64,000 nt of DNA, taken from Setoptus koraiensis. Its lineage: Eukaryota > Animalia > Arthropoda. The notes under the pieces are model-generated. The model had not been told where the DNA came from. It searched no databases and worked only from the letters and a program-made list of their open reading frames with translations. The stretch lies in assembly GCA_048013815.1 (NCBI GenBank), contig CM106585.1, positions 12,214,001 to 12,278,000 of the forward strand, written 5' to 3'. The position numbers were made by a program, and so were the translations under genes. Shown piece after piece: positions 48,948 through 55,798 of this stretch. The stretch's first letter is position 1. Each line of letters starts with the position of its first letter.

Positions 48948-50501
48948 TGGGCCACCCGGCTGCCCATTGAAAAAGCCCGCGATTGTTGACAATGACCGAG
49001 TCGAAACGCACCGAGCGGCCGGGCCAAGCCGGACGCGCTTCGAGAGGGCGCTCGCCGTAGTTAAGTTGTCGTAATTGACTCCGCGCGCAACCTTAAAAGA
49101 TAGCCGCTCGTGTCTGTTACGTAATACGCCCAACGCCACGTAATATATGTAATATGGGCCCCTATTCGAGTGAGCGGCTCGCCGGGGGAAGCCAACAACG
49201 TGTGCCGTCATGTGACTGGCTGGCTGCAGCCAACCAATGAGCACATTGTATAAGCTCACCATTTATATTCGCATAATGATGCCATCTCATCATCAAAATG
49301 ACGCAATGATTGAAATGATGCCCTCCCCCCCCCCCAATTCATGGCGGCCGCATCAGTGGACGCCACATAAAATAATTTGCCGCTAGATGCAGGCAAAGGG
49401 CAGGTGACTGGCGAACGGGCTCAACGGGCCCGCATCCGGTCGGGCTTCCGGCCCGGAAATTTGATGCCGCGTTGTTGTCGTCGCGGTCGTTGCTGGCTCG
49501 ACTCGAGCCGCTCGAGCGCTTTATTTGAATTTCTGACGAGTAATACTTGGCAAGCAGTATTGCGACATCTCATGACAATGGCTCGTCTCGACAATATCCT
49601 TGAGGGACGAGCGGTAACGGCGGGCGCGGTCGCCGACCCGCACGCAGCTCACCGTGCTGAGCTCATACCGCGCATACGAGCTCGTATGCGCGTATAAAGT
49701 CTCGGTACGTATGTGACCGGCGGTATACCGCCGTCACATACCGTACCGATATACGTATATGTTGTTGTTGTTGTACATGGTACAGCGAATGTGTTTTTCG
49801 GGTGGTGGCCGCCAGGCGGCAAGGCGCGCGCGCGCGCCGATCAAATCGCTGTTGATAACAATACCAATGTCGATATAACCATAACAACCATTAGCGCCCC
49901 AGCAGCTGGCCCCGGCGCGCTGTCATGCAATAGTCACTACTAAACTCGGTGTGCGTGTGTGTGATGTGCTCGGGTACATAGGAGCGTTTGGCGACTCACT
50001 CAGACACTGCGAGTGGGGGGCGCCCCACTCGCAGCAGTTGTCAGCAAACGGCAGCAACACGGCAGAAGCGAGAGGGGGAGCCAGTGTCTAGTGGCACACA
50101 CTCAGTAGCTGCCAGGCCCGTGTGTGTTTGTTTGTTGCGTAATATAGCTAACCAGATAGCTGCAGATAGAGCAAACACACACAACACACACACGATATAA
50201 ATGACAACAACAACAGCGAGTGCATGTATAGCCCCAATAGAGCTGCATGTTAACGAGGCCGCCGTTGGGGCCCCATATTGGCCGACTGGGCTGTTTCGAC
50301 TGGCTAGGAGTGGCTGTGAGGACAATGCACTGAATTGTGATCACACTTTATTTGTTGTTGTTTAGGGCGCCCCCCCCCCACACACACACAAACTAGCTAC
50401 TAGCTAATGCCGCTATCGCTGATAAATTATCCGCCGCTATCGGCCAATTGTTCATCACATCATCGATGCAACAGCAGCAACGACAGCAACAGCAGCAGCA
50501 A

Positions 50502-50548
<47 letters not shown>

Positions 50549-50836
50549 CATATTAACAACATACACACACGTATTACATCAGAGTGCCTCAAACAGACCT
50601 CGTGCAGACAGTTATCGGTGACAGCGGCAGCTGCAGTAACTTTGGCCTCACCTTTGTAACCATTAGCACACACACACACACACACACACACGGTTAAGAG
50701 GCGCGCTCATAAAATAATATCAATTACGCAATAGCAATTGAGTGAGCTCAACGCGCGCACACACACTCACAACGGTTTACGACGGTGGACAACAAATAAA
50801 CCGGAAATAGAGACAAGCAAGAGACGCAACAGCGAA

Positions 50837-53800
50837 ATGTCGTCGTCGTTTCCAGCGGCCCGTCGAAACAGCAGCAACAACAACAACAGCGGCAGCAACA
50901 ACAGCAGCAACAGCAACAACAACAACAGCAGCAACAGCAACAACAACGGCGGCAACAATAACAATAACAACAACAACAACAACAAGACCAGTCAGCACGG
51001 CACAACAACCAGTGAAAACACAATGAGCACCGAGGAAAAAAAAGCCACATCGGTAACAACCACAACAACCACGACAACAACCACGACAAGCACCACCAAA
51101 CAGCACCACCAGCACCACCACCATCATCACCACCATCACAACCATCAGCAACAACCACCCAGCACCAGCGCCCGTTCAGGATCATTACGCCATATGCACA
51201 TGCTTGTGATTAAACAGGGCCCGACGGCTCCAACAGGCCGTGCATAATGACATTTCATGACATTGGCTGAATGTATTTTCAATTTAGTTCGTTCTGTGAG
51301 ATAGACCAGGTAAAATTGTTGATGATAACGTTTACTTTTATACATGTCAATTTCATCGTCAGGAGGTGCGCGAAGCGACCGCTGGCCGACGACTTACCAT
51401 TTCCCAGCATGGACCAAATGGCCGACGCAATAGTGGACATTTGCGTCCAAATGCGCGTCAGGTGAGTCCGCGACACTTTGCGGTGTTTCGCGACACTTCA
51501 TTGTGGCATTCCGAGGCATTTCGAGGCATTTCGAGGCGTTTCGCGACAGTTCGCGGCACTTTCGCCCGTCACTCACATTGAGCCGCTCTCTGACTTCCGC
51601 TTGATTTTCGCTCGTTTCATTTTTTGCACGCAGGTCCTTCATCGGAATGGGCGTGGGCGCGGGCGCCTACATCCTGAGCCTGTGCGCTCTCAACCGGCCC
51701 GACCTGGTGGACGGTCTGTTCCTGATAAACCCGCTGGCGAACAGCTGCTCGTGGACGGAGTGGATCTACTCCAAAATGACAGCGCTCACCTCAAAGGCCC
51801 TGTATCACAAACAACCGTCGGCCGCCATTCCACACACAACAAGCTCAACAACAACAACAACAACCACAAACCAATTGACGCCGCCTAGCCACCAGCACCA
51901 GCAACAGTCGGAACCGGAAGTGCAGCAGGACACCCATCAGCACCATGGCAGCAGTAAAAAGATGACACCCACGGCAAGGCTGCGCCAATTAATAGTGTCA
52001 AACTTGCATTTACAGCATCACAACTCGAGTCACCAGCAAACAACAACAAATCACAACAGCGGCAAATGGGACGCGTCGCACATTGACAATGACTCGCCAT
52101 CGGCCCATTCGGACAAATCGCAACCCGACGAGGGCGCCCCCACCGGCGCCGCATCCGGTCACGAGTCGCCCGCCAGCCAGGCGCGCCTGCCCATAGAATA
52201 CCTCATGTACCATCATTTCGGGCCGGCTTCAGTGGGCCGCTGCCGGCGACTGTCCGACACCGGCTCGACGGTGCCCGCTTTCTCTGAACACCAGACGTCA
52301 TCGCCGGCAGCAGCGGCACCGTCGGCGGCAGACACCCAATCGCCCGCACACGGCACAGCACACGGCACAGCATACGGCACAGCAAAGGCCGACGGAACGC
52401 CGCCCGGTCGCGGCGCCCACGACGGCACCGGAAGTAACGCCAGCGACAGCCTAAAGTCGTTTTCGCAACACAATGCCGACACAACGGGCTCCTATTCGAG
52501 CGGCAGCCCGACCAGCTCGGTGAGCCGGCCGACGGCCAACATTGGAACAATACTGGCGGGTATCACCACCGATAAGCAGCGCCACGCGCAAATTTACAGT
52601 ATTTACAAGGGATATTTCAAGCGTATCAATAGGCACAATTTGATTTTATTCATACAATCATTCTTGAAGCGCCAAAGTTTGAACTTGCGCAAGGACTGCG
52701 GAGCCGCCGCTCATGCGGCCGCCGCGGCGGCCGCGCTGGGCGCCTCCATCTGTACCCCGTTCGGGGCGCCGCCGGGCGCGGCAGCCATTTCGAGTGTGCC
52801 CGGCGCGGCCAAGTCGTCGAGCTTGAGCCAGGGCCATCGGGCCACTAACGCCGCCAGCGACCCGACAATACAGGCCAGCCAGTCGAAAGAGGAGTCGGCG
52901 GCCGTTGTGGCGAAGCGCTTGACCGAGTCGCCGCCGTCGTCGTCGTCGGGCAGCGGCGCGGCGTCCGTCTCCGAAACAAAGAAGCCGGCGGGTTTGTTGC
53001 GCAACAGCTGCCACCGGCAGAGCAGCGCCAGTACGTGTAGCGGCGCTAGCGGGTCATTGAAGCGCTTCAGCAGTGGCGGCCCGGCCGGCATCGGCGCCAA
53101 AACGGGTAGCGGCGGCAATCTGAGCGGATCCGCCAGCGGTGTGCCCATGGCTGCCCGGCCGCACATACTCAAGCATCACTCAGTGGGCAGCGGAAGTAGC
53201 GAGCTGAGCATGCAAAGCGGCGGCTCGGCCAACAGCAACGCGCAATCGTTTTCGAGCGGCCTATCCACCATAGACGGTCCGACGCGACCGCTGGACGGGC
53301 AAGATGGGCCCGAGAGTTTGAGGAGCGAGCAATATGGCGAGCCCGATGAGGACGCCGATGACGCACCGGAACCGGTGGACTCAGTCGACAGCAAGGACGG
53401 GGCAGCCGACGAGCCGGCCCGGCCATCAAGCGGCGCCGCCAAGGATACAGTACCGACGAAGGGTCAAAAGTCGCAAGCGGCCAAACCGTTGACGGGTGTG
53501 TCCGCGCGGCTCAATCAGCAACAGCAACAGCGAGCGGGTACTTACAACAAGACGGCGGGTATTTTGCGCAACAGAAGCGTTACGTCGTCGGGCACTGCGG
53601 CGTCCGGCGCGGGTACCGCAATGCAAAGCTCGACGCCCGTTCTAGTGGCGGGCACCAAAGTCAAGAAAACATTTACCTGTCAGACGCTCATTATGTGCTC
53701 GTCGGTGTCCACTCATTGCGACCACGCGCTCAGCTTAATGTCAAAATTGAACCCGTTGCAATCGACCTGGATTAAGACGGACAGTCTGTTGGTTTTGGAG

Positions 53801-54082
53801 GAACGGCCCGACAAGGTTTGCCAGGCGCTGCGCCTCTTCTTGCAGGGCATCGGTTATTCCATGTCCAGCTACGAGAAGCGGCTCAGGTTGTCGCGGGGCG
53901 GCCCGTCGTCGTCGCCGCCGGCGCAAGCGCCGCCGAAAAAGGGCGGCACGGGCGGCTCGGGACAGCGGGCGGGCGGCGCGAGTGCGGCGCAGCCGGACCC
54001 GGTCGGTCAGTCGGGAGCGCAGCAGAGTCAGCACCCGTTCGGCGGACACACGCGGCGCCGGCAGTCGTCGGTGCCCTCGTGA
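50837..54082 (+). CDS. NDRG: NDRG-family alpha/beta-hydrolase-fold protein (MESK2/NDRG3-like), nested antisense in the exp intron; 5' exon is frame-disrupted as assembled
   Basis: Exon (50837 or 51023)-51461, intron 51462-51633 (GT-AG, phase 2), exon 51634-54082. Motifs: [104 protein letters not shown]. Confidence 0.88.
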
Positions 54083-55798
54083 GTGAATTTTTCGTGGAGG
54101 CATTTTTCGTGGGGCATTTTTGGCCGGCGGCTATTGGACAGTGTCGTGACGGGAACTGGCGGAGCGCAACGGCCCGGCCGACCGGACAAGCCCGTAACCG
54201 CAAACAACAGGTTTGTTGGTATTGATAAACGGCCGCTCAAACACACGCACACACACACACACACTCGGGCCGGGCGACTCAGGTGAGCGGCGGAGGCAAG
54301 TGCGCGACGGCACGCACTCATGAATTGTAATAATTGAGGCTGTTACAATGGGTAACACAATTATAATTATGTTATTAAATACATGTAATAATATCACAAA
54401 TAAACACACCAGCGCACGCATAAAATAGATATAGCGGGCACGGCACCAAAAATAAGCGAACCGGGCCGGTCGATTGCGCAACAGCGCCGACGTGTAATCG
54501 GCCGAGCGGCCGTCGCGCTGACCACCGGCTAACCTAGACCCCATTGGCTCGCCACTGGAACCTGTCGCGGCTCACGCAACAACTGTACACGTATGTACAT
54601 GTACTAATGAGCTCGCAAGGTATTTGATTGTCGGATATATTTCGACCGTCGGTGTGTATTTTTGGCGGTGCCGAAAATACACACCCGACGGGCGCCCACC
54701 AAAAATGCGTATTGTGTCACACAATTTGTGTGCCATGTGAAACGCCTGTGTGTCTGAATTGCGTTCAATTTGCGACGAGCAGCCACTGCGCCACACTGGC
54801 CCCATTAGCCACAGTTGGCGAGGGGCACAGGTAGCAGACGGGTGGCGGACAAGCGGCGGCGGGCAAGGGGCGGCGGACAAGCGGCGGCGGGTGAGCGGCT
54901 ACGGGCAAGAGGCGACAGGCTGCTGCAAGTGCGCGCAGTGGACACTCTCGACCGACCGTATTTGACGGCCCGTTAGTAACGGGCGCCCGCTGTGGCCGGC
55001 CCGCAGCCGATCGGGCGGCGCCGGTGCGTCGAGTGTGTCACCAAATCATTAGGGTGCGTGAGAACAATTGCACCTGTCGCTCATGTCAGGCGACCGAAAC
55101 GGCAACAGCGGCGGCCAGGGCAACACATGACAAGCTTGATTGTGCGGCTGGCTCGGTAATTATTATCCATCATGGTTGGCACGGTTGCGCAACGCGCACG
55201 TAGACGAGCACCAACAACAACCACGGCAACAACAACAACAGCAACGACGACGACGACGACAACAGCGACAGGTGAGCCGACCCTGAACTGGCGCGCTCGA
55301 ATTTCGGCCAGACGGCGCCCAATGCAAACATTGTGTGTGCGAGTGGCAGTGTGAGAGTTAATTTAAAACTAACGACTTGTCAGAGAGTTTGACTGTGTGC
55401 GCACACATTACGTAACACACAGCGTGTGTAATGTGTATCATGTAATACGTTTGATATGTGTGCGAGCTTGTGAGGATGTCGACAGGATGATCATTAATCA
55501 GCCATTGGCGACAACTCACTGTCAGTCGCACTGTTCACAATGTCAGTCGCAATGGCAGCGCGGCTCGCAATTTGAATTGACTGTCAGGTGAATCGTTTGT
55601 TGGGCCAACGAGCCAGCCAACGGCAACAGGTGAAGCCGACCGAAGCTACCTGTGCGCTCGATTTGCCCAACTGCCAGTAGGTAACTCGACACAGCAGCGA
55701 TTGATTGTTTTGTTTGCGATTGTTGGCGCCGGCAAGCTGCGCAGCGCGCACTGTCAACCCGGCCAACAAATCACTATCAGCTGACTGTCACCTGACTC

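Follow-up and report, generated by a model that had tools for sequence, protein, structure and literature searches.

The first coding exon of an NDRG gene in the mite Setoptus koraiensis cannot be translated as it is written in the genome assembly, which raises the question whether letters missing from the genome are restored in the mRNA, whether a decayed allele was assembled, or whether the letters were lost on the way from reads to consensus. The locus lies in a window of 64,000 nucleotides (contig CM106585.1, positions 12,214,001 to 12,278,000 of the forward strand), and all positions given here are counted from the first letter of this window. An earlier note, written from these letters by a reader who made no database searches, had observed that the exon reads correctly once Gs are inserted at about seven places and had put forward G-insertion editing or slippage as a candidate explanation, with unpolished long-read errors and 5' decay followed by re-initiation as the more mundane alternatives.

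A long-form NDRG gene and its first exon as written

Judged by its sequence, the locus is an ordinary gene of a mite-specific long NDRG subfamily (Table 1). The Pfam profile PF03096 (Ndr) matched 51271-51462 with 24 bits (profile positions 40-98) and the downstream 811-codon open reading frame (ORF), which starts at ATG 51647 in exon 2, with 95 bits, both values exceeding the gathering score of 23.3 bits. A tblastn search with the NDRG3 protein of the eriophyoid mite Fragariocoptes setiger (P0013) covered 51154-51462. The 811-aa product matched 16 long NDRG proteins, with collinear full-length similarity that includes the N-terminal motifs; only one of these relatives, P0013, bears a name ('Protein NDRG3, partial'), and no protein of the same species was among the matches. 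All 16 relatives possess an intact N-terminal exon, with the successive motifs (Y/F)(K/R)IITQYGDMLV(I/V)KQG, RP.IMTFHD(L/I)GLNSELQF, HVNFIGQE and YPS(V/M)(E/D)QMAE.IVD(I/V)C.Q(L/M)R(V/I)RSFI.

Table 1. Features of the NDRG locus, in window coordinates.
Feature	Position	Strand	Basis or remark
Low-complexity N-terminal ORF, ATGs at 50837 and 51024	50837-51155	+	Phase differs from that of the IIT exon
NDRG-homologous part of coding exon 1, FRIIT... to ...VQMRV, ending AG/GTGAGT	about 51172-51461	+	Pfam, tblastn, N-termini of relatives
Patch of disagreement between window and run X1	51191-51395	+	13 listed places: 7 missing, 3 extra and 3 substituted letters
In-frame stop TAA, homology phase	51211-51213	+	From letters missing at 51196/51197 and 51216
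In-frame stop TGA, homology phase	51268-51270	+	From missing C after 51266
Phase-2 GT..AG intron, 172 bases	51462-51633	+	Sequence; V-R-S-F-I reading across the junction as in relatives
Coding exon 2, intact, rest of the Ndr domain	51634-54082	+	ORF, Pfam, relatives

Within exon 2, a low-complexity insert several hundred residues long splits the Ndr domain in this mite lineage into two Pfam-matched stretches, and conserved blocks are located at the start and at the end of the exon. This split-domain layout is common to all 16 relatives, which range from 511 to 1182 aa, and conserved islands occur within the insert. Elsewhere in the genome, two other NDRG paralogues were identified at G000:C1:23266575-23267015 (L001) and G000:C1:9959299-9959694 (L004). 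They are open over 385 and 409 aa without stops and show 43% and 29% identity, respectively, to the N-terminal region of P0013.

Most of the NDRG homology of exon 1 is carried by the codons at 51142+3k, referred to here as the homology phase. As the earlier note had stated, the exon is frame-broken in the window: the homology phase contains two stops, the segment HMLVIKQG sits in another phase, and the conserved motifs are spread over several frames. The same note was also right in describing the block at 51179-51366 as more AT-rich than the downstream exon (GC content of 0.40 vs 0.63) and the latter, 2.4 kb long, as frame-intact; the exon 2 ORF is whole and near-identical between sequencing runs. 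By homology alone, a frameshift-aware alignment with conservative penalties gave strong support only for a change near 51217-22, and the shifted segments LN and QE are too short for proof in this manner. A splice acceptor at 51179 (ttcag/G) was rejected, as the upstream residues F-R align with the conserved Y-K/R of the relatives.

Since the shifts of frame are paired and lead back to the main phase, one may think of a rescue of the exon as it stands by tiny introns, by read-through of the stops or by programmed ribosomal frameshifting. This explanation is scarcely credible, because no precedent is known for six or more shifts together with two stops in 190 bases, neither slippery heptamers nor GT..AG pairs are found beside the segments, and an intact genomic version of the exon occurs in the public run X1 described below.

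Exon 1 in public sequencing runs

At least part of the stretch is contained in 8 of the 14 public runs listed, which include no run recorded as RNA. The runs X1, X6, X3 and X4, all in the form of Logan contigs, were compared with the window over 51050-54150. The patch is covered by run X1 only, with two contigs; X6, which originates from the same sample as X1, as well as X3 and X4 have no contig there, a gap that is no evidence either way. Contig 1 of X1 spans 51156-51196, and contig 2 (356 nt, depth 112.3, with a flanking depth of 75-148) spans 51198-51529 and thus includes intron sequence. As the intron is read through at similar depth and no splice joints were found in any of the four runs over 51050-54150, the X1 contigs represent genomic DNA and not cDNA.

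Comparison of these contigs with the window revealed a dense cluster of differences. Letters present in X1 and absent from the window are two Gs (after 51196 and 51197), a G after 51216, a C after 51266, an A after 51272 and Gs after 51274 and 51357. The window carries extra letters at 51365, 51367 and 51395, and substitutions were found at 51191, 51326 (T>A) and 51373 (A>C). Where the two contigs end (51196/51198), X1 reads ...ATC ATT ACG CAA TAT GGC GAC ATG CTT..., and the window reads ...ACG CCA TAT GCA CAT GCT, two Gs short and with the substitution at 51191. At the site of the TGA (51268-70), X1 reads GGC CTG AAT AGT GAT. For contig 2, the alignment pairs 336 letters with 332 of the window and has 10 gap letters, which corresponds to 7 inserted and 3 deleted letters; 5 of the insertions are placed, and 2 further ones are counted from length arithmetic only. 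The position of these two is most likely at about 51368-51395, since the conserved downstream residues must be in frame.

Application of the listed X1 differences by a script removed both stops and yielded one open frame, IITQYGDMLVIKQG...TFHDIGLNSDFQF...HVNFIGQE. The corrected reading agrees more closely with the mite orthologues than that of the assembly, as seen in IITQYGDMLV.KQG, GLNSELQF and HVNFIGQE, and the N-terminal NDRG motifs at this locus are whole in the X1 version only. Scores of the frameshift-aware alignment against three relatives increased upon correction from 206 to 249, from 154 to 191 and from 137 to 193, which bears out the earlier proposal that small insertions restore a reading like that of relatives. 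Past the restored stretch, the frame is off by two without the two unplaced insertions; from the length arithmetic and the conserved downstream frame we infer that X1 is intact at about 51368-51395 as well. The intact version of exon 1 is present in the genomic DNA of this species at full depth, taking all of the depth per site in X1 (112.3 of 112.3).

The insertion sites proposed earlier can now be compared with genomic letters. Single Gs had been placed at 51217-19 and at 51358, and both recur in X1. The two Gs at 51196 were correct in number and letter and misplaced, X1 having GGC GAC and not GGG CAC. For the sites at 51265-66 (one G) and 51273 (two Gs) the number of letters agrees with X1 and their kind does not, C being found at the former and A together with G at the latter, and of the two Gs at 51365-66 only the effect on the frame survives, the underlying changes being the three deletions and the two unplaced insertions. 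A single G at 51179-80 is contradicted by the X1 contig, which is gap-free over 51156-51196. The view that only Gs are missing does not hold in the presence of +C, +A, three deletions and three substitutions in X1, nor is every restored codon a glycine codon, as GGC GAC (Gly-Asp) and AGT GAT (Ser-Asp) demonstrate.

Over 51396-54150, the runs differ from the window only by a small number of polymorphisms, for the most part indels of a multiple of three: -6 at 51890 and +CAG at 52033, along with some SNPs and with changes past the stop codon. The first two, located in coding microsatellites, are found in X1, X6 and X3 and are absent from X4 and the window. Past the stop codon, X3 shows a 15-base insertion at 54098, and a 1-base deletion occurs at 54117. 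X4 is identical to the window, with 0 differences, over 51456-53703 and has no contig on 51050-51455. The intron contains a tandem 10-base unit (TTCGAGGCAT-like) at 51495-51545, the copy number of which varies between runs, as indicated by 10 extra letters in X6 contig 24. In one X4 contig, the sequence up to 51485 is joined to an exact reverse-complement copy of 51090-51115; an inverted fold-back junction of this kind is typical of a whole-genome-amplification or library chimera. The depth of X4 is highly uneven and falls from 108 to 0 within 2.5 kb.

Upstream of the patch, all four runs lack coverage (depth 0) over 51050-51153. In the IIT phase, no ATG follows the TGA at 51013-15, and the ATG-bearing ORF lies in another phase; for this reason one more missing letter is to be expected between 51016 and 51155, the A8 run at 51036-43 being one candidate site. 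One further letter would be expected to join the ORF of ATG 50837 or ATG 51024 to the IIT phase.

Origin of the disagreement

The break in exon 1 is very probably due to consensus errors of the assembly, clustered in some 200 bases (51191-51395), and not a biological feature. The window disagrees with the independent contigs mainly by indels and does so in one short stretch, as long-read error patches do: the disagreement amounts to about 7% within 51191-51395 (13-15 differences) vs about 0.2% over the next 2.7 kb, and among the 13-15 differences there are at least 10 indels whose length is not a multiple of three. Clustered indels of such lengths are a signature of noisy-read consensus and not of natural divergence. 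The patch adjoins about 750 bases of CAA/CAG/ACC low complexity (50400-51160), which are uncovered in all four runs, and the gap of X4 directly beside its exact match to the window fits a stretch that was left unpolished by short reads. As general background, published chromosome-scale assemblies of eriophyoid mites were obtained from PacBio CLR or ONT reads and polished with short reads (PMC11920263, PMC11879100).

Accordingly worded as a mechanism, the assembly consensus would have dropped letters in 51191-51395, mostly through deletions and with G favoured, and polishing with short reads probably failed at the edge of the long low-complexity repeat. The real genomic exon 1 would be intact and would encode the normal N-terminal part of the mite long-form NDRG protein, and neither editing nor slippage nor recoding would be involved. 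A second copy of exon 1 that might have acted as tract donor was not found in the species' own genome (48.76 Mb, two pieces), where distant paralogues only were detected. Likewise, tblastn of five relatives revealed no other copy of exon 1 within the window. A word search of the protein collection for intact fragments from the same species, made with a 64-aa piece of exon 1, returned no candidates.

Some points count against consensus errors as the cause. The whole case rests on one run (X1) with two contigs, X1 is polymorphic relative to the window elsewhere and may therefore represent another haplotype or population, and the G bias comes without a demonstrated technical cause. The second point leads to the possibility of a real allele, in which the assembled haplotype would carry a decayed 5' exon, being null or truncated with re-initiation at ATG 51271, and haplotypes of the X1 type would be intact. 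At least two haplotypes do exist, given that X1, X6 and X3 share the -6 at 51890 and the +CAG at 52033 and X4 equals the window; this window-like run has no contig on the patch, and the two other NDRG paralogues could buffer a loss. However, at least 10 indels not divisible by three would have accumulated in 205 bases with the rest of the 2.4-kb ORF left untouched and near-identical between runs. Decay would not be so confined, so dominated by indels or arranged in frame-restoring pairs, and the intact form accounts for the full depth per site in X1. A real allele of this kind is thus unlikely, and re-initiation at ATG 51271, which the earlier note had considered, is unneeded given the intact genomic exon in X1. 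Even less probable is that the window version truly occurs in the assembled animals as a segregating haplotype with an indel-laden 5' exon, the animals either tolerating a null or truncated NDRG or repairing the message in the RNA. We infer that the window version stems from assembly or polishing rather than from a rare real allele.

RNA editing by G insertion, or transcriptional slippage, would require a genome that lacks the letters and an mRNA that gains Gs. The exon as written is indeed unreadable without additions, and G makes up 5 of the 7 listed missing letters compared to 22% G in the block (post hoc binomial P of about 0.007). Nevertheless, the probability of this explanation is close to nil. 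The letters are already present in genomic X1 contigs that include the intron, which is the very observation that the earlier note had named as speaking against its proposal of a cryptogene. The added C and A, the three deletions and the three substitutions go beyond G-stuttering, two of the Gs have no neighbouring G on the side that stuttering requires, and the runs listed include none recorded as RNA. If true, G-insertion editing would be the first known case in an animal nuclear gene, and the evidence says no. Of the explanations offered earlier, it is the local, G-biased error of unpolished long reads that the comparison with X1 favours.

For users of this assembly, the consequence of the error patch is that at least one dense cluster of small indels creates false stops in a conserved gene. 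Frame breaks elsewhere in the genome should for this reason be checked against reads before recoding, editing or pseudogenes are called, and gene models at the NDRG locus should use the corrected exon.

Comparison with known systems

The P gene of paramyxoviruses, in which Gs are inserted by polymerase stuttering, resembles the NDRG patch in that several of the letters missing here are G. Stuttering, however, is limited to G, to RNA and to one slippery A(n)G(n) site, whereas the NDRG letters are found in genomic DNA, at many sites, and include C and A in addition to deletions and substitutions. A cryptogene is characterised by genomic DNA that lacks the letters and by the insertion of a single kind of nucleotide at defined sites, either slippery or specified by guides; at this locus, contigs with intron sequence hold the letters, and the changes comprise five times +G, one +C, one +A, deletions and substitutions.

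With the long NDRG proteins of acariform mites, represented by P0013, the gene shares the N-terminal motifs, a long disordered insert that interrupts the domain, and the conserved block at the C-terminus. It differs from them in the sequence of the insert and in the low-complexity N-terminal tail, which are species-specific, and in the broken exon 1, a difference confined to the assembly rendering. Apart from an apparent bias towards dropped Gs, the patch itself corresponds to the clusters of indel errors in polished long-read assemblies (PacBio CLR or ONT): mostly 1-base indels relative to contigs derived from short reads, strongly local, situated beside low complexity, and giving spurious frameshifts and stops to a gene that is intact elsewhere.
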